From Macrostomum hystrix (Eukaryota > Animalia > Platyhelminthes), in the NCBI GenBank assembly GCA_950097015.1, contig CATNEN010000029.1, positions 2,728,001 through 2,792,000 of the forward strand: a DNA stretch of 64,000 nucleotides, written 5' to 3'. The stretch's first letter is position 1; each line of letters opens with the position of its first letter. This document shows, one piece after another, positions 1 through 61,957 of the stretch. A program made the position numbers and the translations under genes. The notes below the pieces were generated by a model. That model saw nothing but the letters and a program-made list of their open reading frames with translations, did no database searches and was not told the DNA's origin.

Positions 1-1880
1 GCGTAGGGCCGCGGCCGACGGCGCAGCTTTTCAACTAGAACGGCGGAAACCCAGTCCGCATCGTCCGGGTGGAACATGAGGAAAGCGTCGCAGGCCTTGG
101 CCTCGCCGGTGCATTCATCGCGGTCGAAAGGGTGCAGGCCGCAGCTGGCGAACAGGCTGACGCGGCCACAGAATGCCGCTAGGAGGGCCATGGTGGCCAG
201 GGCTAGGATGGTGCTGATGGCCGAGGAGCTGAGGGCCAGCCGGTCGTAGCCTCGGTTGGCCGGCCGCGGCTCCGGCAGGTGGCAGAGTGCCGCCGGGCTC
301 AGCGTCAGCAGTGAGCGATCGCGTAGGCGCGGCGGCTCGGCGCAGCGCACGTCGTCCGGGGCCAGGAGGCGGTCCCGATGTGCTCGCAGCCAGCCGATCA
401 GCCAGCTGGCGTTGCAGCCGCAGTGCCAGGGATTGTGGTCAAGTCGGATGCGGCGCAGTCGGGGCAGCGACACTGTGAGCATCTCCTGATCCAGCTGGGT
501 GAGCAGGTTGTGGTGCAGCATGAGCTCCTCCAGGCTCTGCAGCTTGGCCAGGTAGCGGGCCGGCAGCTCTTCGAGACCGGTGCCGCTCAGATCCAGGCTG
601 GAGGCCTCGCGAAACACCTTCGGCATACCGGGCAGGCCGCGGCTGGCCATGCGACCGCCGCTGAAGTTGAAGCGATATGAATAGTCGCCATTAGCTGGCA
701 GCGGCGGCAGCTCCCGCCAGTGCGGCAGCCGGTCGAGGGTGGCGCCGCGACAGTCGACCAAGACAGCCCGGCGCCAGGGCTCCTCTGTGCAGCGGCAGCG
801 CCCGGCCGCCGAGTCCAGGCAGGGCTCGCGCCGGCAAGTCAGCTCGGCTGGCGCCAGAGCGGGCCGGAAGTCGGCGCCAACCAGCGGACGACGGCCTCGC
901 AGTTCTGCTGGCTCGAAGCATTCCGGCAGGGCGGCGGGACTTTCGAGCAGGGCGGCTAGCGGGGAGGCTCCCTTGCCGGCCGGGTAGAGAAGCGGGAAGT
1001 CCTCGCAGTCGCAGCGGAGCGGATTGCCAGCCAGGCTGCTGATCAGCGGGCGCCAGTTGACGCCGGGCGTCGGATGATTGTCCAACAGGTGCCAGCCTTT
1101 CAACAGGCTGCCAAGGTGCTGAATGCCATTTCCAATCAGGCTAATGTTGAGGCCGGCTTCCGCCAGGCGGTCTAGAGTCCAGGCAGACGTCCGTCGTTCG
1201 GCTGTGAAGCGGCGAATCCGATTGTGATCGAGCAGCAGCCGCAGTTGCCGCCTGAGACCCGGACGCGGCGACCCGGTCCGTTCAGCCAGCTCCAGGGGCC
1301 AGTCAGTCAGCTCGTCCAGGAGATTGCTGCTGAGGTCAATCCGGGTCAGATGGTCGGCGGCTGTTGTGCTGAATGCCACCGCGGAGATGTTGAAAAGCCG
1401 GTTGCGGGCCAGGCTCAATCGGCGAAGTCGCGGCGCCGCCAAGGACCCGTCGGCGAGGCTCTCAAGCCGATTGGCGTCAAGTACCAGGTCGCGGAGTTCG
1501 GCGAATCCAGCGAAGGCTCCGGCCGGCAGGTGGATGAGATCATTGCGGCTGAAGTTCAGGTAGATGAGGCGCGGCAGGCCGGACAGTCGGGTCAGAAGGC
1601 TGGCAGCCGAGCGGACTCGGCTGACGATCAGGACGTTGAGGTCGCCGCCAGCGAGGCAGTGGGTCATTGGGGTTAGTGCCGCGGAGTCAACAGCGAACGC
1701 GCAGTCCAGGTCCAGGTGCTGCTGCGCGAATGCGTACCGAAAAATGCAGACTGGGCAGGCCGCTGGGCAGAGCCGTCGGCAGTCTTCCTGGCCGATCGCA
1801 GCGGGGCAGGCCAACGCCAGGAGCAGCGTCAAAAGCTGAGCCAGCAGCTGCCAGGTGGAGCAGCTGCGCATGCGGCTCAT
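1..1880 (-). CDS. Toll-like receptor, multiple-cysteine-cluster (protostome) type; 3' end (most of the TIR domain) lies outside the window
   Basis: Manual translation of the minus frame (codons at 3+3n) is stop-free from ATG 1880 to the edge. It reads: MSRMRSCSTWQLLAQLLTLLLALACPAAIG (signal peptide); CRRLCPAACPVC (LRRNT); LRRs LIYLNFSRNDLIHL, LRDLVLDANRLESL, LRRLSLARNRLFNI, LTRIDLSSNLLDEL, LRLLLDHNRIRRF; LAGNPLRCDC..C..C (LRRCT); C..GRCRC..VLVDC (second LRRNT); SSLDLSGTGLEEL, LEELMLHHNLLTQL; LDHNPWHCGC..VRC..LC (LRRCT); TM LALSSSAISTILALATMALLAAFCG (~165-240); then HPFDRDECTGEAKACDAFLMFHPDDADWVSAVLVEKL (TIR box-1 region). An in-frame upstream ATG exists at 1943. Confidence 0.92.
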   Translation of the reverse strand, partial: MSRMRSCSTWQLLAQLLTLLLALACPAAIGQEDCRRLCPAACPVCIFRYAFAQQHLDLDCAFAVDSAALTPMTHCLAGGDLNVLIVSRVRSAASLLTRLSGLPRLIYLNFSRNDLIHLPAGAFAGFAELRDLVLDANRLESLADGSLAAPRLRRLSLARNRLFNISAVAFSTTAADHLTRIDLSSNLLDELTDWPLELAERTGSPRPGLRRQLRLLLDHNRIRRFTAERRTSAWTLDRLAEAGLNISLIGNGIQHLGSLLKGWHLLDNHPTPGVNWRPLISSLAGNPLRCDCEDFPLLYPAGKGASPLAALLESPAALPECFEPAELRGRRPLVGADFRPALAPAELTCRREPCLDSAAGRCRCTEEPWRRAVLVDCRGATLDRLPHWRELPPLPANGDYSYRFNFSGGRMASRGLPGMPKVFREASSLDLSGTGLEELPARYLAKLQSLEELMLHHNLLTQLDQEMLTVSLPRLRRIRLDHNPWHCGCNASWLIGWLRAHRDRLLAPDDVRCAEPPRLRDRSLLTLSPAALCHLPEPRPANRGYDRLALSSSAISTILALATMALLAAFCGRVSLFASCGLHPFDRDECTGEAKACDAFLMFHPDDADWVSAVLVEKLRRRPRPY

Positions 1881-3869
1881 GTCTTTCAAGCTCAGCCGAC
1901 GGCACTGACCTGTCTTCGCTTTCGCATGCTTTTGGCCACGCATATATTATAGCCAGAAATAGGACAGCATTGGTGTATGTCTTTTTATATCTGCGAAGCC
2001 CCCTCTTCCCAGTAGTCGCTCATTGGCTGGCAACGTCACAGGCCATAATCTGAGCTATATGCCAGCCAACTCCTGGACCTGGGGTTATCAGCTTGACAAT
2101 TAAATAAAATATGGCGAGCTACAGCATAAAGACAAGGCGCGGACGGAGGCAGGATACGTTTTGTAAAAGCGCTGCAACTGATGCCGTATGCCATCAATTA
2201 TGCAGGCCTGTCAGAGGAGGCGGGGAGCGGTATAGCGGGCCGCACTGACACGGCCGCTACATGGCACTGCCGTTGGCTCCATTTACTTTTAGTCTCCAGC
2301 CAGATTTACCTTTTAGGGGATAGCGTACGATAGCCGATGACGCTACAAAAGCCTGCCTGCTCTCAGAGGGGAACGCCCTTGAGACCGGGGTAGGAGGCCT
2401 GGTTTAACTCAACGTTCTCAATTCCCATCAGTGCCTGCTTGCAAACGTTAATAGCTGGCTATTGCATAATATTTCTGTGTCCCTTTTTTGCTTCTTTTTC
2501 ACTTTCCTCTTTCTTTAGTGTGCGAGTCGGTAAAGCGCATCAGACAATTGCAACAAAGGTCTTGAGCTCGATTCCGTGGCGATATTGTTTACCTTGATTG
2601 AGGGCCACATTCGGAGCCATTTTTGGTGCCACTAAGGTACTCACAAGCTGAGTACTCCTTACTTGTCATTAAATTAAAAATAGCCGAATCCTTCCGACCT
2701 CAGTCGCGTGCCTGTCGCTAGACACACCTGAGGATTTATTTTGTGCTCATTAAAGCAAGGCCAATTTAATATTCATTTGCTGCGCTGACGTCTTTTAATT
2801 CGAAGCGACTTCGTTCCGAGCGGCGTAGCGGATGCGCTCCACAGGAGGCACGTGCCTTCTGCTGAGGGCCTGTTTAGTTCTCGATCCCACTTCACCGCAG
2901 TTTAGACAATGCGAGCGGCCATCTGAGCACTGCACTGCTACAGCAAAAGCTGCGAAGGATTGTGTTCGCAGTGGAGGGGGCAATTCAGACCACAAAATTG
3001 CGGCTCGGGTCAAGCGATCAGCAGACAGTGAGAAGGAGGGGAGATACAGAAATTCTTCATATTTTTTTCTTCCGAATTGAAACAGTTGAGAGATAGTGGG
3101 GGGTAAGAGGAAACCTAGGTCCTAGGGTTAGATTGGCGGATCAAGTTTCAACTGTTCCAAAAATTTTGGCTTTCACTGTCTCAGTAGAAGAAACCTTCCC
3201 CCATCTCCCAAGCAGCAGCGGGAGGGTGGACAGGGGAATCGCTATGTATATAAAGGTGGGAATTGGGAATTGGGGCAGAAATTGACGCAGGAGCAGCAGC
3301 AGCAGCAGCAGCAGCTACATTAGCTCTTAACTATATGCACACCTATATGAAATTTCTGTATCACATGCCTCGAATAAATTGAGGGATTTAGTCAATACTG
3401 CAACTTACTCTCTGGCCAGTAAAAAAAGCACACACACCTACCCACACGGACACAGTTGAGCTGCGTCTATTCTGCACTTACAACTGTCGCTTTCACTCTC
3501 TGTGGGTAGCTGTAATTCTGGCGCATCCAGCTCAAACTTGAACACATTTTGCTGGAAAGCGGGCGAGGGCACACACTCAGCGCACACACTCACTTCACTG
3601 GACCCGAGAACACTGTGCTCAGTTCAGCACTCCGCTGTGCAAATTCGCCAGTTTAGACAGATCAGAGGCTTGAATCTTAATTTATATTCTCACCTGCTAA
3701 ATTAGCCCATGATTTTGTCTCTGATTTGTGGACGATCATATTGCCTCCTTCAGTAAGCTCAGCTGAGGGGTCAATAGGGTACAAAACTGCGCTTGTATAA
3801 ATGTGTTGCCCGTGTGGGTGAGTTGAAGCCAGGGCTGTGTGACCTTTGTCTATCCGGAATTGAGTACAA

Positions 3870-5155: not shown

Positions 5156-6575
5156 TTGTGACTGTGCACTGTGCACAGCTAATGGCAGTTTTATTAGCGT
5201 TTCCAATGCTTCCTTGTATCTTTGAATGGCTTATAAGGTGATTTTACTGCCTTGATAATCATTAACTTTATTGGTTCTGCTGACAAACCCATCGAGACAC
5301 TTAACTCCCTAGAACTATGAGCTAAACTAAAACAAAACGATTGCATCCTTATCCAATTAATCGTTTAAAAACCAATACGTGACTAGCTTCAAGCTTCAAG
5401 CATGAGCAGGTATGTTTGCTTCAGCATCACAATATGGATTTTGTGTCAGTTTTTGGCCAGTTATTTTAGACTCATTCTAGATATTGACGCCACAATGCCA
5501 ATGCTAACCATCCAGGTGTAAATACTATATAGCCTATGCACTTGGGCCCTCACCATGCATGCCTGTCAAACACGTGTCACAATCAAATGTGGTGACAGCA
5601 TTCTTATAAGCGAGCTTTAGAATTTCAATACTAGAACTATGCGAAATTCTTATTGCATACATTTTTTCGTCAAGTGTCACTTTCGCGTCCTTCAGCAACA
5701 ACTCAATTCTATATTTATCCATGGCAAACAATGAATTGTTTCAAGGGAATATTATAATACTCCTGTACATACAAGCGCACAGCTAATGACAGTTTTATTA
5801 GACGTATTTTTCACCTTTTTTAAAGTCTAAAGTTTACTAGCCTTTTAAAATCGCAATGGTGTACGCCCCCATTGTTCTTATAGTTTGCCGTTCTCCCACT
5901 TCCTAAATGTTTTGCCCCCACCCAGCCAGACTTGTGGAAGTCCTCTCTATTAATTATTATTCTCATGCCTGTTGTACATGTTAAGATAAGAGGGTTGGGC
6001 AAGGCCCTGAGGAGCAGGCGCGAGTCACAGTCGGGTCCAGAAGGCGTGATTTAAAATTAATGAAGCTTTCCTTTCCAAACGTGCTACGACTTCTTTACTT
6101 CCACTCTTGGCCCCTCTGTGCCACACATAGTCAGGGCGAGGGAGGGATGAGGATAGAAGATGAGTAAGGAGAAACTCAGTGAAAGAGGGGACGTGCTCAA
6201 ATATATTTAGCCACAAGCCGTGCAGTCAGTTACCAACGTATATAAACATTTATAAAAGTGATATTGCTTTGGCATCGTATGGCTCACTCAGTATAGTGAA
6301 ATTGCTCATCTGTGCTCAAATGTTAAGCAAGCATTCTAGTTGTGTTGATATTGCTAATATACTATAAGGCAAAATAATAATGAGCTGCGTTTCTGTAAGT
6401 CCACGAGTTGACAGTTCACTGAGAAGACAATAAAGGGACTGACGGCACTGCTATTAGCTTCATATTGGAAATCCGATAGGAAATCCGATCCTGAACTTGC
6501 GAAACAGACTGTCGAATAGCAATTAGCAGCTCGTGAGAGCAGAGAGTTGATATAAAAAAACAGAACAATAGCCAA

Positions 6576-8174
6576 ACTCGAAGCCATAGCAATACACAGA
6601 CTCGAAGCCAGAGCAATACACAGACTCGAAGCCATAGCAATACACAGACTCGAAGCCAGAGCAATACACAGACTCGAAGCCATAGCAATACACAGACTCG
6701 AAGCCATAGCAATACACAGACTCAAAGCCAGAGCAATACACAGACTCAAAGCCAGAGCAATACACAGACTCGAAGCCATAGCAATACACAGACTCGAAGC
6801 CATAGCAATACACAGACTCAAAGCCAGAGCAATACACAGACTCAAAGCCAGAGCAATACACAGACTCAAAGCCAGAGCAATACACAGCCTCAAAGCCAGA
6901 GCAATACACAGACTCAAAGCCAGAGCAATACACAGCCTCAAAGCTAGAGTAATACACAGACTCAAAGCTAGAGTAATACACAGACTCAAAGCCAGAGCAA
7001 TACACAGACTCTAAGCCAGAGCAATACACAGACTCTAAGCCAGAGCAATACACAGACTCAAAGCCAGAGCAATACACAGACTCTAAGCCAGAGCAATACA
7101 CAGACTCAAAGCCAGAGCAATACACAGACTCAAAGCCAGAGCAATACACAGCCTCAAAGCCATAGCAATACACAGACTCGAAGCCATAGCAATACACAGA
7201 CTCGAAGCCATAGCAATACACAGACTCGAAGCCAGAGCAATACACAGACTCGAAGCCATAGCAATACACAGACTCGAAGCCATAGCAATACACAGACTCG
7301 AAGCCATAGCAATACACAGACTCGAAGCCATAGCAATACACAGACTCGAAGCCATAGCAATACACAGACTCGAAGCCATAGCAATACACAGACTCTAAGC
7401 CATAGCAATACACAGACTCGAAGCCAGAGCAATACACAGACTCGAAGCCATAGCAATACACAGACTCGAAGCCATAGCAATACACAGACTCGAAGCCATA
7501 GCAATACACAGACTCGAAGCCATAGCAATACACAGACTCGAAGCCATAGCAATACACAGACTCGAAGCCATAGCAATACACAGACTCAAAGCCAGAGCAA
7601 TACACAGACTCAAAGCCAGAGCAATACACAGACTCGAAGCCATATCAATACACAGACTCGAAGCCATAGCAATACACAGACTCAAAGCCAGAGCAATACA
7701 CAGACTCAAAGCCAGAGCAATACACAGACTCAAAGCCAGAGCAATACACAGACTCAAAGCCAGAGCAATACACAGCCTCAAAGCCAGAGCAATACACAGA
7801 CTCAAAGCCAGAGCAATACACAGACTCGAAGCCAGAGCAATACACAGACTCGAAGCCAGAGCAATACACAGACTCAAAGCCAGAGCAATACACAGACTCG
7901 AAGCCATAGCAATACACAGACTCGAAGCTTGAGCAATACACAGACTCAAAGCCAGAGCAATACACAGACTCAAAGCCATAGCAATACACAGACTCAAAGC
8001 CAGAGCAATACACAGACTCGAAGCCATAGCAATACACAGACTCGAAGCCATAGCAATACACAGACTCTAAGCCAGAGCAATACACAGACTCAAAGCCAGA
8101 GCAATACACAGACTCAAAGCCAGAGCAATACACAGACTCAAAGCTTGAGCAATACACAGACTCAAAGCTTGAGC
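6576..8174. repeat. 24-bp minisatellite GCAATACACAGACTCGAAGCCATA (~66 copies)
   Basis: Direct reading; it generates the spurious CYGFESVY/ASSLCIAM ORFs. Confidence 0.97.
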
Positions 8175-18768: not shown

Positions 18769-20641
18769 ATGCTGACGCGAAGCCTGCCATCCAGCCGACA
18801 GCCCGCAGCGGGACTGCTCCGCTGCTGCCGACGCTGGTTGAACCTTCAAGAATACCAGAGCAAGAAGCTCATGCAGGACTATGGTGTCAATGTACAGAGC
18901 TTTGTTGTCGCCGAGAACGCTCAGTCGGCCAAGAGTTTGACAAGCTCATTCCGGCCGACCGAGTACGTAATTAAAGCCCAGATTTTGGCTGGTGGCCGAG
19001 GCAAAGGCACTTTCGACACCGGCTTCAAGGGCGGCGTTCATCTGACCAAGGATCCGGCCAAGGTGTCCGGTCTGGTTGAGAGCATGCTGGGGCACCGACT
19101 GGTCACTAAGCAGACTGGCAAGGATGGCGTCCTGGTTTCCAAGGTAACGGGATCGGGAAACCGGTTTCGACTGTAATCGCTTGATGACCCACTGCCTCTC
19201 CGATGACCCACTGCCTCTCCCATGACCCACTGCCTCTCCGCTGACCCAATGACCCACTGCCTCTCCGATGACCTACTGCCTCCCTGATGACCCAGGCCTG
19301 ACCCACTGTCTCTTCGATGACCCAAGCCTGACCCACTGCCTCTCCGACGACCCACTGCCTCTCCCATGACCCACTGCCTCTCCGCTGACCCAAGCCTGAC
19401 CCACTGCCTCTCCGCTGACCCAAGCCTGACCCACTGTCTCTCCGATGACCCAAGCCTGACCCACTGCCTCCTTGATGACCCAAACTTGAACCCACTGCCT
19501 CTCAAATTAATCAAGGTTGACCACTTCATTTTTTCCTTGATCTTCTAAACCCATCAGGTGATGGTGGCGGAGGCGCTAGACATCAGCCGTGAGACTTACC
19601 TGGCCATCCTAATGGATCGCGAGTCAGGCGGCCCGGTTGTTGTCGGCAGTCCGCAGGGCGGCATGGACATCGAAGAGGTGGCCGCGAAAAGTCCGGATGC
19701 CATCTTCAAGGAGGTTGTGGACATTAACAAGGGTCTGACCAAGCAGCAGGCGGACCGCATGGCTGAACGGTTGGGCTTCTCTGGACCCAGGCTCTCCGAG
19801 GCATCTGACCAAATTTTGCGACTCTACAAACTGTTTGTCTCCGTTGACTGCACTCAGGTAGATTGGCCTGAATGGCAACCAGGTAGATTGCCATTTTTAG
19901 CACTTGTTACCCTAACCATTGCATCCCGCAATGCTAAAACTCTATACAGGTTGAGATCAATCCATTCGGTGAGACACCCGACGGTCGCGTTGTCTGCTTC
20001 GACGCCAAACTCAACTTTGACGACAACGCTAGTTTCCGTCAGAAGGCCGTCTTCGAACTAGACGACCACGCCGAATCGGATCCGCGCGAGGTTGACGCCG
20101 GCCAGCACAACCTGAACTACATCGGCATGGACGGCAACATTGGCTGCCTGGTGAATGGCGCCGGCTTGGCCATGGCCACGATGGACATTGTGCAGCTGTG
20201 CGGCGGCCGGCCAGCCAACTTCCTTGACGTTGGCGGCGGTGTCACTGAGAAGCAGGTCTATCACGCGTTTCGTATACTCACTTCGGATCAGCAGGTAAGA
20301 ATTGCAATTTTATAAATTAATTAATTCAGGCTTCGAATGAGTTCATTGCGTAGATCTGAAAATCACGTAATTCTCAAAAACACTTTTGCCTAAATCAGCA
20401 TTGAAACCAGGTGCGCTGCATCCTAGTAAACATATTTGGCGGCATTGTAAACTGTGCAACCATCGCCAAGGGCATCACCGAGGCGGCCAAGAAGATCAGC
20501 CTTCGCGTGCCCCTCGTTGTCCGCCTTGAAGGCACCAATGTTGAGGAGGCCAAGCGGCTGTTGGCAAATAGCGGATTGCCGATTCTGAGCGCCGAAAATC
20601 TGGAAGATGCCGCCAAGAAGGCTGTTTCAGCGCTGAAATAG
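18769..20641 (+). CDS. SUCLG2: Succinyl-CoA ligase [GDP-forming] subunit beta, mitochondrial; 4 exons, 416 aa
   Basis: Exons 18769-19143, 19558-19857, 19950-20294 and 20411-20641, all phase-0 GT-AG. Motifs: [71 protein letters not shown] is the GDP-type signature (the ADP type has GIMRCD). Confidence 0.96.
19183..19503. repeat. Degenerate GATGACCCACTGCCTCTCC minisatellite filling SUCLG2 intron 1
   Basis: Direct reading; units of about 19-31 bp. Confidence 0.93.
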
Positions 20642-28822: not shown

Positions 28823-30212
28823 TATGCCATATGAGGTTTTGATAATGCCTCGAAGGCAAAGTTGGCTTGCAGTTTTTTTGCTAAGTGTTGTCTATATTAA
28901 TTTGTGAGCTGAGAGAAAGTGTCGTTGCCATGGAAACGGTTCAGACAATTCTATAGGCAATGATCAATAAGGCCTGCCAGCCTTGAGCTTGATTACTCCT
29001 GTCGCAGTCTCTCTCCCTCCTGCTGCATCAAGGAGAGCGCCCAGATGCCATCGCCAACCATCCCAATATACAATAGTTGATTAATAAGTAACTAAAACTG
29101 ACGCGCAACATCTTCTCTCGACCCCACTATAGGATGCTGGGTTAAATATTGCGGCTCAATCCAGTACTGATCATGGCCACATCCTGATCTCCATCTCTAT
29201 GTCAGTCCCGCACATGCTTTTTTTGTCCCAGAAATTAGAAATCTGATATCCCCGCAACCCCGTCTGGGCCCGGGATTCGCGCCTGCTGAATAGAATATCG
29301 GCGTTGAAGTCCCAAGTCCTTCGGGTGAGAACACTGCGGACGCCAGTTTCTGCAGTGAACGGAAAGCCAGAAAGTTTTGGGGGGATGGACTGGGGATCAG
29401 CTCGGCTGTCCCATTGGAGCCGGTAATGAAGTGGACCAGACCGGCCCCAAGGGCTCCTCCAGAAAAACCAGCCATTCCCCTACCCCCCGGTCCTTGAAGG
29501 AGTTCATTGGAAGACGGGGCCTCTCTAACTAGTGCACTGGCTCGAGTCAACTCACAGTAGAGAAGCGGGCCAACTTCATTAACATGTCATAATCGTGTCC
29601 GCTGCCGCCATAAATCGTTCAGTGAGGGGATTTTTTGTGCTTCCCGGGCCCGAAAAACCGCGCCTTAGATGGGAGAAAAGAGGAGCGAGGGCCGGGATAG
29701 GGGACGAGCGTCCCCCCCAGTTTGGCCAGTTGTCCCATATTGACCCATAGTTAGACTCGCACTTACTGCTGTGCGAATATAAATACGAATAGAATTTGCC
29801 GGCCAGTCGTGCCTCAAGCCGGTATGTTCAAGCCCACGGGGGCATGACAAGACCGCTTGGGCCAAGGGTCGGGACATTCCTAAGGGCTTCCCTCCACGGA
29901 GCGATGGCGAAGGGTCAAAGCGGACCAAAAAAGTTCAAGAAGAGGAAGAGAATAACACAAGCTTCCTCAGAGAAGCGGTGAGCTCTACTGGAGCGAAAGT
30001 GATTTGCGTCATGCGCACAGGCGGGTCTTCTTCCATCGTCTGCCGCTGCTTGTGCGGCTCGGCCTTCTCTGGCTTGTGCGGGAGCAGTTTTTGCTGCAGC
30101 CAAAGGCAACTTTTACTAGAACAACCCCCCCTGCTTGTTCTGCGTTCCACCTTTATGTGTGAGGTTCTTCTGTTCTCCTTGGAAATAATGTGTGTTAATC
30201 TTCCCCTGCCTC

Positions 30213-31048
30213 GTACTGTCTCTCAGTCCCTCCGTACGGTCTCTCAGTCCATCCGCAATGTCTCTCAGTCCATCCGCAATGTCTCTCAGTCCATCCGCAA
30301 TGTCTCTCAGTCCATCCGTACTGTCTCTCAGTCCATCCGTACTGTCTCTCAGTCCATCCGCAATGTCTCTCAGTCCATCCGTACTGTCTTTCAGTCTCTC
30401 CTTACGGTCTCTCAGTCCATCCGTACTGTCTTTCAGTCCATCCGTACTGTCTTTCAGTCCATCCGTACTGTCTTTCAGTCCATCCGTACTGTCTTTCAGT
30501 CCATCCGTACTGTCTTTCAGTCCATCCGTACTGTCTCTCAGTCCATCCGTACTGTCTTTCAGTCCATCCGTACTGTCTTTCAGTCCATCCGTACTGTCTC
30601 TCAGTCCATCCGTACTGTCTCTCAGTCCCTCCGTACGGTCTCTCAGTCCATCCGTACTGTCTTTCAGTCCATCCGTACTGTCTCTCAGTCCATCCGTACT
30701 GTCTCTCAGTCCCTCCGTACGGTCTCTCAGTCCATCCGTACTGTCTTTCAGTCCATCCGTACTGTCTCTCAGTCCATCCGTACTGTCTCTCAGTCCATCC
30801 GTACTGTCTTTCAGTCCCTCCGTACGGTCTCTCAGTCCATCCGCAATGTCTCTCAGTCCATCCGTACTGTCTCTCAGTCCATCCGTACTGTCTTTCAGTC
30901 CCTCCGTACGGTCTCTCAGTCCATCCGTACTGTCTCTCAGTCCATCCGTACTGTCTCTCAGTCCATCCGCAATGTCTCTCAGTCCATCCGCAATGTCTCT
31001 CAGTCCATCCGTACTGTCTCTCAGTCCCTCCGTACCGTCTCTCAGCCC
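30213..31048. repeat. 21-bp minisatellite GTCTCTCAGTCCATCCGTACT
   Basis: Direct reading; open in four frames. Confidence 0.97.
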
Positions 31049-32062
31049 CTCCCATATCGTTCTCGTTCCGTTCAAAGTTTATTCGGATTCAGTCCACTTC
31101 TAAAGCGAAAAATCAGATGTAAAATAATGAGAAAGCAAAATAGAGTTGGGCAGGCTATCACTAATGAGATTGAGACATACTCATCGGCAACAGGTGTAGA
31201 AAGCATGCTGAGAGAAGAGCCAACCCTGTTACATGAATTCCGAAGTCAAACAGCACAGAACAGTCTCAAGGCGGCCTCGTTAGCGATGAAAATCTCTTTC
31301 AGCACACACCATTGAGCGCTCAGCTCAAAATACGATTAGCTTTTAATTCTAGCAGTAATCTGTGGGTTCTGCTTCGACTGCTAGATGCCCTAAGGCAGTG
31401 AGATGGTTGTGTTGCGATTCCTCACCTATGACTCGCTTTCACTGTCAGTCTTTCGATTCCCGACTCGAATAACAATCTCACCGTTCATGCAATCCAGAGA
31501 TTATCCACCCTTATTTAGCTGCGAGAGGAGGCGATGATAGAGCCATCGAGTTCCAATGTGTGGAGGTGGATATTGAGCCGTATAAACAGCTGGGCAACCC
31601 AGGTAGGACATTGTGGGTTAGCCTCGACTTCGACTTCGAAAGAAAGGAATGCACGAAAGCGGCACAAGAAATTGGGTGCTGGCTGGCGGGCGAAAGACAC
31701 TTCAGTGTCTCTCCTGCCGTATCTGGGACCGCATTGCTGATTCGCTAAGTTCTTATTTGTGTGCTTGGATCTGGCCTTTGCACTTTAGCTAGATTTCGCG
31801 GCTCCCTACTGTGTGTGTCTGTGCTGTGTGTGCCCGTGTCACACCGCGTCGCACTCGGTCCAGTGTGGTAGGCAGGGGGAATCGACATTGTTTATCCCTC
31901 CCACACACCGCAGACAATCACAAACAGGATTTTCCCTTCCGCTCTTTGCCACCCACCGACCTGCAGCCGGGAACCCCCGCCGTGTCTTAGATGCCAAGCA
32001 CAGCCTGAACTGGGCGCTGTCAGACAGTCACTCACATTCATTTCTCACCTGCTAACTTCTGC

Positions 32063-46369: not shown

Positions 46370-49360
46370 GCTGCCTGAGAACACCGGCAGTGGCATCCGC
46401 TGCTGACAGCTGCTCTGTCGGCGAGAGCTGGAGAGCCTGCAGGCAGGTCTATCCAAATGTGCAGCTGTCTCAGAGTCCGTACAATTTCGATTGGAATCCA
46501 TTGGAGAGCCTGCGAGAGATGTGCAGGTTAGGATTTACCATAGACAGTCCGGTTGCCAACAAGACGCTAACAATGTCTCCAATGAAATACATTCCAGACA
46601 CAGAGACCACGTGAAACTGTTGAAATGTCTGCACGACACGCTGAGCCAAAACTGCGACGGCCAGAAGGACTATTCGTACTTCATATTCCAGACGGTGATG
46701 GACTACCGCCGCTACGAGAGGGCCGCTGACTTTATCTGCCAGGAGAGCAACATTGAAAGTGAGCCGCTTTGCGCTTCTAGGTGGAGCTTGAAGTTTCGAA
46801 ATGGAGTTTCGGGAACGCCTTTTGGTCGATTTTCGGGTTGGTTCATTGTTCGAGTTTCGGTTTGGTTTTCGGTGGAGTTTCGGTTTGGTTTTCGGTGGAG
46901 TTTCAGTTTGGTTTTCGGTGGTGATTCGGTTTGATTTTCTTTGGAGTTTCTGTTTTTTGTTTTCGGTGGAGTTTCGGTTTGGTTTTCGGTGGAGTTTCGG
47001 TTTGGTTTTCGGTGGAGTTTCGGTTTGGTTTTCGGTGGAGTTTCGGTTTGGTTTTCGGTGTAGTTTCGGTTTCGTTTTCGGTGGAGTTTCAGTTTCATTT
47101 TCGGTGGTGATTTGGTTTGATTTTCTGTGGAGTTTCTGTTTGTTGTTATCTGTGGATTTTCGGTTTGGTTTTCGGTGGAGTTTTGGTTTGTTTTTCAGTT
47201 CGAGTTTCGGTTTGGTTTTTTGTGGAGTTTTTGTTTTTTGTTGTCGGTGGAGTTTCGGTTTGGTGGAGTTTCGGTTTGGTTTTCGGTGGAGTTTCTGTTT
47301 GGTTTTCGGTTCGAGTTTCGGTTTGGTTTTCGGTGGATTTTCGGCTTGGTTTTCGGTGGAGTTTCGGTTTGGTTTTCGGTGGAGTTTCGGTTTAGTTTTC
47401 GGTGGAGTTTCGGTTCGGTTTTCGGAAAAAAGCAACAGCCAAAGAGTGTGCATTTCAACATTTTTGCCCCATTCGCCCCTCAGTCTACGAGCGCAGCCGC
47501 GGCTGCCTGGGCCACTTCCAAGAAGACGTGCTGCCCTGCGCCAAGAAGCGAACACTCAGCGACACCATGAAGGCAGCGGGCGAAGATATTCAGCGAGCTC
47601 TGAGCGACCAATCGGAAGACACACGGGGCATCCGCACCGACAAGGCCGCCATGCTGCAGTTCATGGAGCGCAAGATAAAACAGAAACTGTGCGCGTAAGT
47701 CAGCCTCCTTATCTGTGATGTCTGCGCTGTGTCGTCAGCCTCCTTATCTGTGATGTCTGTGATGTGTCGTCAGCCTTCTTATATCTATTATGTCTCTGCA
47801 GTGTCGTGAGCCTCCTTATCTGTGATGTCTGCGCTGTGTCGTCAGCCTCCTTATCTGTGATGTCTGCGCTGTGTCGTCAGCCTCCTTATCTGTGATGTCT
47901 GCGCTGTGTCGTCAGCCTCCTTATCTGTGATGTCTCTTCAGTGTCGTCAGCCTCCTTATCTGTGATGTCTCTTCAGTGTCGTCAGCCTCCTTATCTGTGA
48001 TGTCTCTTCAGTGTCGTCAGCCTCCTTATCTTTGATCTCTGATGTGATATGTGATGTCTGCGCTGTGTCGTCAGCCTCCTTATCTGTGAGGTCCCTACTG
48101 CTGATGAAGAAAGCAGTTAATCGAATATTTGAAGCCTAAATATTCATGCCTTATATAAACTTTTTTGATGTGCTCAAAGTGGAGCAGTAAAATAATCTTT
48201 TTGCATAGCAACTAGGCTAATCAAAGGCAGTCGGAAATAATAGGCCATTGCCAGTAGAGAACTGCATAGCAAAGTTGCTGAATAATTTGAATGGATCCTG
48301 CAGTAAGTAGACTAGAAAAAAATTGTTTTTAAACTGTGCTCAAGCCAAACTCTCCGGTTGATTGGACTCTCCCTCGATTCTCAATTTATCTGAGCAGCGG
48401 AGAACCTCAGTGGCTGGTGCTGTGTCTCAAAACTTTTTTATCGCTTTTAAGATGACGGAGACTGGCCCTATGATGGAGATATATCCCTCCAGGGCAGCAG
48501 GGAAATCAATGCTGCCGCCTTCATTAAGTTAGTTAGGAAAAGTTATAACTAAAGCTAGTATGCTACTGCGGGAAACGTTTTTCAAAACGAGCCTTAATTA
48601 GAAAAGATAAAGCATCATGGGTCTAATTATGGGTCAGAAACTTCAATTGCAAACACAACTAACTTGATGCTTTTGAACCCCCACAGCTCACAGTCCCCAG
48701 CTTCATCAGCAACACACAGCTCACAGTCCCCAGCTTCATCAGAAACCCACAGCTCACAGTCCCCAGCTTCATCAGCTCACAGTCCCCAGCTTCATCAGCT
48801 CACAGTCCCCAGCTTCATAAGCAACACACAGCTCACAATCCCCAGCTTCATCAGCTCACAAGCCCCAGCTTCATCAGCTCACAATCACCAGCTTCATCAG
48901 CAACCCACAGCTCACAGTCCCCCAGCTTCATCAGCAACACACAGCTCAAAATTCATAGTTCAGAAAGTATATGTAAGCAACTTGAATGTCGAAAGCTATT
49001 CGATAATGTAACTAATTTCGCAGGGACCGTCGAGTGATGATCTCATGCGTGGAACGGACTCTACTCAATGACAGGCAGTTGTGCCCAAGCGCCAGCATTG
49101 GCCTAGTGACTAGCTACTATGCCCTGCTGCTGCCAAAGAGCTGCAACTATGTCTGGCTGGCTCCTCCTAGTGAAGCGGTCGGCGAAGCCACTTTGTCAAC
49201 GCAGCGTCGTCTGGATGCTCGCCAATCAGGAGCCGACTTCGGCTACGGAACTGGCAGTGTTCGCAGCGGGGACCTAGATCGCAGTGGGGCTAGTGCTGGG
49301 GTGTCGCTGGCTAACACCGTTTCATTGGCAGTCGCCGCCGCCATCAGATTCCTGGTGTAG
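46370..49360 (+). CDS. Cysteine-rich, probably secreted/GPI-anchored protein (two 6-Cys modules); 5' exon not fixed
   Basis: Exons 46370-46526, 46598-46758, 47484-47694 and 49024-49360 join GT-AG in consistent phase (2,1,2) into ~288 codons. The protein ends SGASAGVSLANTVSLAVAAAIRFLV*, with small residues followed by a hydrophobic tail. Cys pattern: SC..AC..MC..KC..NC..IC / GC..PC..LC..SC..LC..SC. Confidence 0.85.
46803..47426. repeat. 23-bp G/T-rich intronic minisatellite GGAGTTTCGGTTTGGTTTTCGGT
   Basis: Direct reading; it fills the intron between exons ending 46758 and starting 47484. Confidence 0.94.
47698..48088. repeat. 35-bp intronic minisatellite GTCAGCCTCCTTATCTGTGATGTCTGCGCTGTGTC
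   Basis: Direct reading; the first unit overlaps the GTAAGT donor. Confidence 0.94.
48680..48950. repeat. Degenerate CACAGTCCCCAGCTTCATCAGCT intronic repeat
   Basis: Direct reading. Confidence 0.88.
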
Positions 49361-58202: not shown

Positions 58203-59106
58203 GAGCTCTGATTGAGACAGACAGGCAGAAATAGCTAGAAAAGTCTATCTTATAGACTGGATCACTATATAATAAATGAAAGTTTGTGTGAATTCGCTAA
58301 GCTGTCTCGCCGCATCCAGCCGCGCGTAAGATAAGATAATCTCCCAATGAGGATTTGGAATGCTTTTCATTATTCATATCAATTTTTCTGCATCCAACTT
58401 TATTTTTTCCTCACTAGTCTCTCTGTATTTATCAATCTGAATACTGGATATTTTAATTAAAGATCAACTTTAAATAAGCTATAGTTTATAGGTTCTGAAG
58501 AAACTAGCCTGTACTAAATCATAATCGATAATCTTCAGTTAAAAAGTGCATTAGTAATGGACCAATTTCCTATGCTCAGAAATACAAGCAAAAGAGAAGT
58601 GATCCGAATATTAATGGCCGGTGGGGAAGAGCTGCTTAATACGCGCGTTCTGCATAATTCATGTGTGTGCATTTGCAGTCGGAACAATTCTCAAGCCACC
58701 CAGCCTTCAAAGCCAAAGCCAACCTCGCGACTTTAATGGCACCGGCGTGTCCCATTGTACAGAGATTAGATTTTTTGTAACTTATCGGCTCACTGAGACC
58801 AGGATCGGTCGTAAGAAGCGACTAACAGATCTGGGCTAAGTGGAGCATTGCATTGTATAGGAGGTGATTTTCTGTTAGATCAGCTGTCCTAGCCGTCATG
58901 GCTTCAGGACAATGTTCAATGCATTAGTAATTAGCATTTTACTTATAGCATTAGGCGTACATCAAGCTACATTTTAACCCGAGAGTTAAACACACAAGTA
59001 CATATAAAAATCAATTTTTTATGCTTAGTTGCTGTAATTACTGAAAACAAACATTTACTTTTAGCAACAAGTAATTAACCTCTATTTATATTTGAAAATA
59101 ATGTGG

Positions 59107-61490
59107 AATCGTGGGAGCCTCAAACTGATTGGATGGCGGAGTGGTGGAAGCCTCAAACTGATTGGATGGCGGAGTGGTGGAAGCCTCAAACTGATTGGAT
59201 GGCGGAGTGGTGGAAGCCTCAAACTGATTGGATGGCGGAGTGGTGGAAGCCTCAAACTGATTGGATGGCGGAGTGGTGGAAGCCTCAAACTGATTGGATG
59301 GCGGAGTGGTGGAAGCCTCAAACTGATTGGTTGGCGGAGTGGTGGGAGCCTCAAACTGATTGGATGGCGGAGTGGTGGAAGCCTCAAACTGATTGGATGG
59401 CGGAGTGGTGGAAGCCTCAAACTGATTGGATGGCGGAGTGGTGGAAGCCTCAAACTGATTGGATGGCGGAGTGGTGGAAGCCTCAAACTGATTGGATGGC
59501 GGAGTGGTGGGAGCCTCAAACTGATTGGATGGCGGAGTGGTGGAAGCCTCAAACTGATTGGATGGTGGAGTGGTGCAGCCTCAAACTGATTGGATGGTGG
59601 AGTGGTGCAGCCTCAAACTGATTGGATGGTGGAGTGGTGGCAGCCTCAAACTGATTGGATGGCGGAGTGGTGCAGCCTCAAACTGATTGGATGGCGGAGT
59701 GGTGCAGCCTCAAACTGATGGGATGGTGGAGTGGTGGGAGCCTCGAACTGATTTGGTGCAGTGGTGGCAGCCTCAAACTGATTGGATGGTGGAGTGGTGG
59801 GAGCCTCAAACTGATTTGGTGGAGTGGTGGGAGCCTCAAACTGATTTGGTGGAGTGGTGGGAGCCTCAAACTGATTGGATGGTGCAGTGGTGGGAGCCTC
59901 AAACTGATTGGATGGTGCAGTGGTGGGAGCCTCAAACTGATTGGATGGTGCAGTGGTGGGAGCCTCAAACTGATTGGATGGCGGAGTGGTGGAAGCCTCA
60001 AACTGATTGGATGGCGGAGTGGTGGAAGCCTCAAACTGATTGGATGGCGGAGTGGTGGAAGCCTCAAACTGATTGGATGGCGGAGTGGTGGAAGCCTCAA
60101 ACTGATTGGATGGCGGAGTGGTGGAAGCCTCAAACTGATTGGATGGCGGAGTGGTGGAAGCCTCAAACTGATTGGATGGTGGAGTGGTGGAAGCCTCAAA
60201 CTGATTGGATGGCGGAGTGGTGGAAGCCTCAAACTGATTGGATGGCGGAGTGGTGGAAGCCTCAAACTGATTGGATGGCGGAGTGGTGGGAGCCTCAAAC
60301 TGATTGGATGGCGGAGTGGTGGAAGCCTCAAACTGATTGGATGGTGGAGTGGTGTAGCCTCAAACTGATTGGATGGTGGAGTGGTGCAGCCTCAAACTGA
60401 TTGGATGGTGGAGTGGTGGCAGCCTCAAACTGATTGGATGGCGGAGTGGTGCAGCCTCAAACTGATTGGATGGCGGAGTGGTGCAGCCTCAAACTGATTG
60501 GATGGTGGAGTGGTGCAGCCTCAAACTGATTGGATGGTGGAGTGTTAGGAGCCTCAAACTGATTGGATGGTGGAGTGGTGGGAGCCTCAAACTGATGGGA
60601 TGGTGGAGTGGTGGGAGCCTCGAACTGATTTGGTGGAGTGTTAGGAGCCTCAAACTGATTGGATGGTGGAGTGGTGGGAGCCTCAAACTGATTTGGTGGA
60701 GTGGTGGGAGCCTCAAACTGATTGGATGGTGGAGTGGTGGGAGCCTCAAACTGATTGGATGGTGGAGTGGTGGGAGCCTCAAACTGATTGGATGGTGCAG
60801 TGGTGGCAGCCTCAAACTGATTGGATAGTGGAGTGGTGGGAGCCTCAAACTGATTGGATGGTGGAGTGGTGGGAGCCTCAAACTGATTGGATGGTGCAGT
60901 GGTGGGAGCCTCAAACTGATTGGATGGTGCAGTGGTGGGAGCCTCAAACTGATTGGATGGTGCAGTGGTGGGAGCCTCAAACTGATTGAATGGTGCAGTG
61001 GTGGCAGCCTCAAACTGATTGGATGGTGGAGTGGTGGGAGCCTCAAACTGATTGGATGGTGCAGTGGTGGCAGCCTCAAACTGATTGGATAGTGGAGTGG
61101 TGGGAGCCTCAAACTGATTTGGTGGAGTGGTGGGAGCCTCAAACTGATTGGATGGTGCAGTGGTGGCAGCCTCAAACTGATTGGATAGTGGAGTGGTGGA
61201 AGCCTCAAACTGATTGGATGGTGCAGTGGTGGCAGCCTCAAACTGATTGGATAGTGGAGTGGTGGGAGCCTCAAACTGATTTGGTGGAGTGGTGGGAGCC
61301 TCAAACTGATTGGATGGTGGAGTGGTGGGAGCCTCAAACTGATTGGATGGTGGAGTGGTGGGAGCCTCAAACTGATTGGATGGTGCAGTGGTGGCAGCCT
61401 CAAACTGATTGGATAGTGGAGTGGTGGGAGCCTCAAACTGATTTGGTGGAGTGGTGGGAGCCTCAAACTGATTGGATGGTGGAGTGGTGG
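59107..61490. repeat. 33-bp satellite GCCTCAAACTGATTGGATGGCGGAGTGGTGGAA (~72 copies)
   Basis: Direct reading; most units carry CTGATTGG (reverse CCAAT box); 29-bp variants read CTGATTTGG and lack it. Confidence 0.98.
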
Positions 61491-61957
61491 CAAATGGCTG
61501 TAATTTTATTTTAATTTATGAGAAATGCAATAAACAACATGTGCACATAAATTTCGCTTCCTGAGAATGCCCAAGTCGCTGCAGGCAACCGCCCTGCCGT
61601 TAATGTTTTTCAGAACGGGTTTCTGGGGCGTTGGGGCCCGTTCGTAAATCAAATATCACAAGTCGAGAGCTCGTGTCCGCTTGGAGATTTTTACTGGTCA
61701 GTTCGATTGCGGAGGCGGAGACGGTTGCGGACTTTGGCTTGAGAGATTTGCGAAGCACTATACGGGGTCTAGTAGCTGAGGAGCTTCGCCAGAGAGTACT
61801 GCTGACAATTTCACTTGGCGCCCAGGACTGCATACTAGTATAGTCTGGCTTACTGATATAAAGTATTAGTCTAGCGAGCTGTATTTTCGAAAAAATGAAT
61901 CCAATAATTTATTTTATGAGGTGATTCCTCACTATGAAGCACTTCGTAATACAGTTT

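Follow-up and report, generated by a model that had tools for sequence, protein, structure and literature searches.

An intact gene for a probable Toll-family receptor in the genome of a Macrostomum flatworm

We describe here a gene, very probably for a Toll-like receptor (TLR), at the left edge of a 64,000-nucleotide (nt) stretch of the Macrostomum hystrix genome assembly (G000:C29:2728001-2792000, on contig CATNEN010000029.1, called C29 below); this stretch at its full length is referred to as the window. An ATG at window position 1880 opens a minus-strand frame that runs for 626 codons without a stop to the left edge of the window (positions 3 to 1880; the translation begins MSRMRSC). The same frame continues for a further 281 codons in the left-flank piece (L003, C29:2720001-2730000) and ends at a TGA at L003 7157-7159, 843 nt outside the window, so that the full protein of 907 amino acids (aa) is encoded by one uninterrupted exon (L003:7160-9880, minus strand). 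An earlier note on this DNA, made from the letters of the window, had reported the 626-codon stop-free frame, had attributed its absence from the open reading frame (ORF) track to a stop codon beyond the window, and had raised the possibility that an interruption immediately beyond the left edge, by a stop or a frameshift, would wreck the TIR domain. The frame and the explanation were both correct, and no such interruption was found, the frame continuing to its full 907 codons. The features of the gene that lie in the window are as follows (aa numbers refer to the full protein).

1..1880, minus: coding sequence of the probable TLR, codons 1-626 of 907, single exon; the remainder lies left of the window at G000:C29:2727157-2728000.
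1791..1880, minus: putative signal peptide, aa 1-30, suggested by hydropathy only (hydrophobic aa 10-30, then AIGQ).
1596..1790, minus: N-terminal cysteine-rich cap, aa 31-95 (Cys 34, 38, 42, 45, 60, and 75), kept in two paralogues on contigs C1 and C38.
1041..1595, minus: first leucine-rich repeat (LRR) block, aa 96-280, about 6 to 7 repeats, from Pfam LRR_8 and LRR_4 and from PDB alignments to Toll5A and Drosophila Toll.
750..1040, minus: internal LRRCT (Cys 290, 292, 321, and 349) followed by LRRNT (Cys 354, 362, 364, and 377), from the cysteine pattern; aa 345-515 align to the internal LRRNT plus the second LRR block of Toll5A (7b1b).
429..749, minus: second LRR block, aa 378-484, about 4 repeats; the best Pfam LRR_8 stretch is aa 427-484.
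276..428, minus: membrane-proximal LRRCT, aa 485-535 (Cys 487, 489, 513, and 533), aligned to the LRRCT of Toll5A, LRG1, and TLR3.
165..239, minus: transmembrane helix, aa 548-572, the sole internal hydrophobic segment and a long helix in the AlphaFold2 (AF2) model.
111..134, minus: juxtamembrane motif HPFDRDEC, aa 583-590, with DRDEC invariant in three paralogues.
1..95, minus: start of the TIR domain, aa 596-626 of 596-739, with box 1 at 72-92.
1984..1989, minus: TATAAA, candidate core promoter, 109 nt upstream of the ATG.
2022..2026, minus: CCAAT, 146 nt upstream of the ATG (this and the TATAAA are matches to sequence alone); a second CCAAT lies at 1969-1973.

An open frame of 907 codons has a chance of ∼1.6e-8 given the local composition (68% GC), and the other five frames over the same stretch contain 11 to 30 stops each. 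The GC content of the three codon positions (69/56/78%) matches the expectation for coding DNA. Directly 3' of the stop, the sequence changes abruptly to an AT-rich 3' untranslated region (UTR) with an AATAAA ∼175 nt past the stop; the GC content of the gene is 67.6%, compared to ∼45% in its flanks. The gene sits 2.7 Mb inside an 8.7-Mb contig. We consider it highly probable that the gene at this locus is intact, lacks introns, and specifies a type-I membrane receptor belonging to the Toll/TLR family, with a multiple-cysteine-cluster (P-type, fly-Toll-like) architecture; the flatworm is a Macrostomum, most likely M. hystrix.

Pfam detected LRR_8 (E of 2.7e-22, three stretches), LRR_4 (E of 7.5e-10), and TIR (PF01582, aa 605-678, 22.8 bits versus a cut-off of 21.3), and LxxLxLxxN motifs lie at aa 105, 129, 152, and 178 in the first LRR block. 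The Pfam signal for LRRCT is weak, at 13.8 bits and below the cut-off; the membrane-proximal LRRCT motif, NPWxCxC...RCxxP, is invariant across the three paralogues. Hydropathy analysis gave just two hydrophobic segments in the 907 aa (aa 10-30 and 548-572), from which we infer a type-I topology, with a signal peptide, the LRRs outside, and the TIR domain inside. The TIR domain is followed by a low-complexity tail of 168 residues. In PMC8609888, a TLR is defined by at least one LRR, a transmembrane segment, and a TIR domain on one protein; LRRs, a transmembrane helix, and a complete TIR domain are all present on this chain. The ectodomain also contains more than one LRRCT, with an LRRCT-LRRNT junction in its interior (seen as cysteine clusters, with both parts aligned to the matching clusters of Toll5A), and the receptor is therefore of the multiple-cysteine-cluster (P-type) class as defined in the same paper. 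The earlier note had placed a signal peptide, LRRs, a transmembrane segment, and the start of a TIR domain on one chain; that architecture stands, with the TIR domain complete and its box 1 to 3 regions present. The Pfam check that it proposed placed LRR_8 and TIR above their cut-offs and left LRRCT below threshold.

Most of the TIR domain lies outside the window. Box 2 (CTHDRARLPG, aa 629-638) is located 4 to 33 nt to the left of it, and box 3 (SFWRELF, aa 728-734), which keeps the FW of the consensus, is located 301 to 321 nt to the left. None of the three paralogues deviates from the P-G of box 2 or from the F-W of box 3. With an alignment of 44 sequences as input, an AF2 model of aa 456-739 reached a mean pLDDT of 89.9. 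When the C-terminal half of this model was searched with Foldseek, it matched the TIR domains of TLR1, 2, 6, 10, and 15, MyD88, the interleukin-1 receptor (IL-1R) family, and Hydra TRR-2, with a probability of 1.00 and TM scores of up to 0.78. A complete TIR fold is thus confidently predicted by the model.

The genome was scanned in two ways: with a TIR model in all six frames and with a profile of the region from the membrane-proximal LRRCT through the transmembrane helix to the TIR domain (LRRCT-TM-TIR). The TIR model retrieved seven loci, and the profile retrieved exactly three full matches with scores of 441 to 546 bits, namely, the C29 gene and two multiple-cluster paralogues on contigs of 27.5 Mb (C1) and 35 Mb (C38). 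Two further TLR genes carry a single cysteine cluster. M. hystrix accordingly has at least five canonical LRR-TM-TIR genes (three multiple-cluster and two single-cluster), which answers the earlier note's suggestion that paralogues be sought. The four genes other than that on C29 are as follows.

C1:26.82 Mb (L002:377-3025), plus: multiple-cluster paralogue, 883 aa, intronless.
C38:8.43 Mb: multiple-cluster paralogue, ∼934 aa, interrupted once by a canonical GT-AG intron of 1,098 nt.
C3:8.68 Mb: single-cluster TLR gene, with a large exon (signal peptide, LRRs, LRRCT, and transmembrane helix) and then a TIR exon.
C1:24.17 Mb: single-cluster TLR gene, with a large exon (signal peptide, LRRs, LRRCT, and transmembrane helix) and then a TIR exon.

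Across the three multiple-cluster proteins, 91 columns are invariant over the 283 profile positions of LRRCT-TM-TIR, including the juxtamembrane DRDEC, THDRA..PG, and FW..YRMPL. The C29 and C1 proteins are 45% identical overall, with 59% identity in the TIR domain, 66% around the membrane, and 22% in the tail. Their synonymous sites are saturated (synonymous divergence, dS, of ∼2), and the ratio of nonsynonymous to synonymous divergence (dN/dS) is 0.30 overall, 0.15 in the TIR domain, and 0.79 in the tail. Given the saturated dS and the low dN/dS, these duplicates are old, and both have been retained under purifying selection. The two intronless genes differ in base composition (C29, 67.6% GC and 78% at third codon positions; C1, 53.3% and 66%), for which biased gene conversion and local recombination rate are possible causes.

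The tails of the three paralogues are unalignable apart from a motif at the very C terminus, which reads ...EATV in C29 (L003 7160-7180, minus), ...EATL in C1 (L002 3005-3025, plus), and ...EVSL in C38 (L015 9517-9537, plus). All three fit S/T-x-V/L, the class-I PDZ-ligand consensus, which suggests that these receptors may be anchored to PDZ scaffolds. Slightly upstream, the otherwise 22% identical tails of C29 and C1 have an STFRS motif in common.

Relatives in other animals were gathered with an exhaustive HMMER search of the three-paralogue LRRCT-TM-TIR profile against 1.84 billion representatives, which returned 3,981 matches at an E of ≤0.001. The best full-span matches ranged from an E of ∼1e-45, for a match covering profile positions 2-282, down to ∼1e-24. 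Since the top full-span score was only ∼172 bits, compared to 441 to 546 bits for the three paralogues themselves, the searched library holds no close orthologue of the C29 protein. Matches bearing names were called Toll, Tollo, or TLR and came from insects (Chelonus, Anopheles, and Anastrepha), a scorpion, Lingula, and annelids (Paralvinella, and Arenicola, as "TLR13"), as well as from amphioxus, a crinoid, an acorn worm, and an octocoral. A word-indexed search with the C29 protein gave a metagenomic 864-aa TLR as its best match (31% identity) and no Macrostomum match in a library without this genome's own proteins.

Maximum-likelihood analysis of the TIR region united the multiple-cluster genes of Macrostomum in one clade (support of 100/100), within which C29 and C1 are sisters (97/88). 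This clade groups with two annelid TLRs and the metagenomic protein at a support of 85/88, a placement that is suggestive, not firm. Between the transmembrane helix and the TIR domain, the trio, the annelid TLRs, and the metagenomic protein all carry WHPF(D/N)xDE, and an HPFDRDEC-like juxtamembrane motif is found in annelid, brachiopod, and octocoral TLRs. The nearest named relatives in the exhaustive search, Arenicola marina "TLR13" (UCK81512.1), Paralvinella palmiformis KAK2163172.1, and Lingula anatina "Tollo" (XP_023933697.1), are spiralian TLRs with WHPF(D/N)xDE and share this HPFDRDEC-like motif. Compared to them, the Macrostomum clade is set apart by a long branch (1.43), and its box 1 lacks the usual SY.

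Among proteins in the PDB, the best sequence match was Aedes aegypti Toll5A (7b1b; E of 7.6e-19), with the internal cysteine clusters aligned, and Drosophila Toll (4lxr) aligned over aa 99-531. P-type Tolls have the same order of parts as the C29 receptor, i.e., a signal peptide, an LRR block, an LRRCT-LRRNT junction, a second LRR block, an LRRCT, a single transmembrane helix, a TIR domain, and a C-terminal extension. However, their ectodomain spans ∼800 aa, compared to ∼520 aa here, and over LRRCT-TM-TIR their identity to the C29 protein is only 24 to 33%. Vertebrate TLR3 and TLR7 are covered by one alignment from the last LRRs through the LRRCT and transmembrane helix into the TIR domain (for TLR3, query aa 422-665), and the predicted TIR fold resembles that of vertebrate TLRs in the Foldseek comparison. 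In contrast, vertebrate TLR3, TLR5, and TLR7 (V-type) have a single long LRR solenoid and no internal cysteine cluster. Vertebrate TLRs bind microbial ligands directly. The C29 receptor belongs to a very well known family, is unremarkable within it, and does not represent a new type of system; what makes it interesting is the group of animals that carries it.

Several observations weigh against the assignment or against a working receptor. The TIR score barely clears the Pfam cut-off, and the domain departs from consensus: box 1 (CDAFLMF, aa 597-603) keeps the DAF of (F/Y)DAFxSY and has its SY replaced, and box 2 keeps the R and P-G of RDxxPG, with the D after the R changed to A. The ectodomain, with ∼10 to 11 LRRs in ∼520 aa, is unusually short for a multiple-cysteine-cluster Toll. 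None of the archived runs recorded as RNA contains the C29 stretch, and four runs of unspecified library type, compared over 4.5 kb, gave perfect short contigs only, inside the coding sequence and 3' UTR. A Spaetzle-family ligand was not detected in the M. hystrix genome; this is a weak test, and the Pfam search behind it (PF16077) is uninformative, as a control also gave nothing anywhere. No kinase motifs of a Death-plus-kinase (IRAK/Pelle) protein were seen within ∼1.5 kb of ten Death-domain loci, a crude look that does not show absence. Finally, neither the word-indexed nor the exhaustive profile search found a multiple-cluster orthologue among M. lignano proteins, in libraries that also lack M. 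hystrix proteins.

Other components of a Toll pathway were sought in the genome, as the earlier note had proposed for MyD88 and NF-kB, and candidates for both were found in the form of a Death-plus-TIR frame and Rel-homology exons. TIR-only genes are present on contigs C7 and C14. Two of the frames are located as follows.

C38:30080039-30081586 (L033:739-2286), minus: MyD88-architecture open frame of 516 codons, with Death (aa 187-261) directly followed by TIR_2 (aa 274-384).
C7:12712447-12713643 (L018:6447-7643), plus: TIR-only frame, TIR_2 with an E of 1.2e-9.

The TIR domain of the C38 frame begins VFISYQWDS and is nearer to the SARM and TIR_2 types than to vertebrate MyD88. The C7 gene, which is preceded in frame by ∼17 copies of a PELQLTE minisatellite, was considered as a MyD88 candidate and rejected, as no Death domain lies upstream and the C38 frame is the better candidate. 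Rel-homology exons include three tandem copies at C7:389919-407456, which encode the N-terminal half of the domain (45 to 47 bits each) and are ∼6 to 12 kb apart; further copies with weaker scores are found at C1:23.99-24.02 Mb and C7:12.50 Mb.

The signaling route that we infer for the C29 receptor is carried over from established Toll/TLR biology. The short ectodomain would dimerize upon ligand binding. If other multiple-cysteine-cluster Tolls are a guide, the ligand may be an endogenous protein that has undergone processing, and not a molecule of microbial origin. Dimerization would bring two cytoplasmic TIR domains together, and the pair could recruit a Death-plus-TIR (MyD88-like) adaptor via the BB-loop region, where the P-G is kept. 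The adaptor would then signal toward Rel/NF-kB-type factors.

The output of such a route may be immune, developmental, or neuronal. The receptor may be expressed and have a main role that is developmental, neuronal, or adhesive, like that of fly Toll-2/6/7/8, in place of pathogen sensing, in which case it would offer no entry point to flatworm immunity; we regard this as possible but rather unlikely. The multiple-cysteine-cluster architecture fits such a role, the named relatives are called Toll or Tollo, the PDZ-ligand-like C terminus of all three paralogues is typical of junctional or synaptic receptors, and a family of three genes is small beside the often expanded repertoires of immune TLRs. 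TLR expression during protostome development has also been reported (PMC8609888). However, both roles coexist in one receptor in insects, and a MyD88-like adaptor and Rel genes are present in the genome.

A silent relic, i.e., a frame that has lost either its transcription or its ability to signal, such as a decoy with a dead TIR domain, is improbable. The case for it lies in the divergence of the TIR domain (box 1 and box 2 substitutions, 22.8 bits) and in the sequencing runs, where the matching contigs are few, short, low in depth, and from libraries of unspecified type. Three such runs yielded perfect contigs of 180 to 221 nt, located as follows.

L003 7028-7207: identical to the gene, spanning the stop and 3' UTR, depth of 2 to 4.
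L003 8404-8624: identical to the gene, depth of 2 to 4.
L003 9258-9455: identical to the gene, depth of 2 to 4.

These contigs are compatible with weak transcription and with low-coverage DNA alike. On the other side, the 907-codon frame is intact against a chance of ∼1.6e-8, the TIR domain has kept a dN/dS of 0.15 across a duplication old enough to saturate synonymous sites, 91 LRRCT-TM-TIR columns are invariant in three paralogues, the TIR fold is confidently predicted by the model, and promoter-like and poly(A) signals are present. Three further observations concern the same archives. A run labeled as a different organism (2024) contains a 182-nt contig identical to the coding sequence (L003 8443-8624, depth of 2 to 4), and a macroalgae metagenome contains 5% of the sampled words of the C29 stretch. 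Many 31-mers at L003 7615-7646 are common to unrelated contigs, a recurrence explained by the GC-rich, low-complexity nature of that stretch.

A foreign origin of the gene, through contamination, chimeric assembly, or recent horizontal transfer, might be argued from its GC content, far above that of the ∼45% flanks, and from the failure to find an M. lignano orthologue of the multiple-cluster type, yet this is very unlikely for a gene that lies 2.7 Mb deep in an 8.7-Mb contig beside ordinary animal genes (including a SUCLG2 exon), whose stretch is present in four DNA samples of one study and, as perfect pieces, in a second study with the same organism label, whose two paralogues lie on other multimegabase contigs (one at 53% GC, one with a GT-AG intron) and form with it a single clade that groups with annelid TLRs in the TIR tree, and whose genome shares the single-cluster TLR type with M. 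lignano.

The identity of the genome was examined through an intronless HSP70 gene (contig C33), whose closest match, M. lignano A0A1I8H2H4, shares 95% identity with it from end to end, with no other match above 84%; the earlier note's impression that the genome resembles Macrostomum is thereby confirmed. Two equal-scoring HSP70 genes lie divergently, 1.7 kb apart, at C33:3867893-3873260, and two more full-length intronless copies are found on the same contig at 4.23 and 4.64 Mb. A COX1 search of the assembly gave no match, and hence no mitochondrial contig is present.

Elsewhere in the window, a frame resembling the last exon of a succinyl-CoA ligase beta subunit (20405-20638, plus) lies ∼18 kb from the TLR gene and fits the SUCLG2 remark of the earlier note. 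The SUCLG2 exons are short, with repeat-rich introns between them, and fall below the length limit of the protein search. Long ORFs at 6354-8157, 29978-31315, 46470-47718, and 59082-61514 are translated minisatellites that are open in several frames at once; one yields a spurious PGF-CTERM match and another dozens of matches to coiled-coil families. The ten longest window ORFs were examined with Pfam and proved to be minisatellite or low-complexity frames only, uninformative as to provenance. A comparable minisatellite load is found beside other TLR loci (L015 2219-3915 and L017 1342-5763).

With the gene taken as a flatworm TLR, the published record has to be considered. M. lignano was scored as having 0 TLRs, and a flatworm-wide absence was reported, in PMC8609888; PMC10279657 likewise finds no canonical TLRs in flatworms, and the same is stated in PMC7958881 and PMC6043800. 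One survey among PMC8609888, PMC10279657, and PMC7958881 relied on the M. lignano score in assigning the loss to the base of Platyhelminthes. The M. hystrix genome paper (PMC10468722) does not mention Toll or immunity, and our literature search found no paper reporting a Macrostomum TLR. The earlier note had described TLRs as absent from planarians and parasitic flatworms, which agrees with this literature, and as patchy in free-living ones, which does not, as none is recorded in any surveyed flatworm (M. lignano, 0; PMC8609888 and PMC10279657).

M. lignano, however, has at least one annotated canonical TLR. BOX15_Mlig015196g2 (929 aa; "TIR domain-containing protein" in UniRef) is 61% identical to the exon-1 protein of the C3 single-cluster gene over 100% of the query region and 81% identical to its TIR exon. 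It crosses the predicted C3 splice junction, ...EW(V/T)YD|ACFIYDE..., and thereby confirms the two-exon model of that gene. An hhalign comparison of the C-terminal 290 residues of this protein with the TLR LRRCT-TM-TIR profile gave a match at a probability of 97%. Pfam, on the other hand, reports no TIR domain in it at an E of ≤0.001, so that surveys that begin with domains would class it as LRR-only. Like the C29 protein, it has an LRR-TM-TIR architecture and comes from the same genus. It differs in having only one cysteine cluster and a coding sequence split over two exons, and its TIR domain is highly divergent (branch length of 4); it belongs to another subfamily, as an orthologue of the single-cluster genes on C3 and C1 and not of the C29 gene.

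In PMC8609888, the predicted proteins of the 2015 M. lignano assembly were screened first with a TIR hidden Markov model. A weak-scoring TIR domain and an early annotation would explain how the M. lignano TLR was missed, and the zero score for this species, with the early flatworm loss built on it, looks like a detection failure. With at least five LRR-TM-TIR genes in M. hystrix and at least one in M. lignano, the published inference of a basal loss needs revision. The claim of the earlier note that a canonical TLR has been retained here is upheld by the LRR-TM-TIR architecture, the complete TIR domain, the constraint on the sequence, and the paralogues.

We think it fairly probable that a functional Toll system, comprising multiple- and single-cluster TLRs, a MyD88-like adaptor, and Rel, was still present in the most recent ancestor shared by all flatworms and that this system persists in Macrostomorpha. 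The published early loss would then be an artifact of divergent TIR domains and early M. lignano annotation, and the true loss would have come later, on the branch to planarians and parasitic flatworms. The C29 gene and its relatives correct the record on where TLRs occur. Their TIR domains reach Pfam thresholds barely or not at all, and TLRs may have escaped notice in the same way in other phyla that are recorded as having none. The genes also provide a receptor set for work on innate immunity and wound signaling in a genetically tractable, regenerating flatworm genus. If the ancestral Toll system was indeed kept, Macrostomum, which is open to transgenesis, would be the one flatworm in which Toll signaling and its link to regeneration could be studied.

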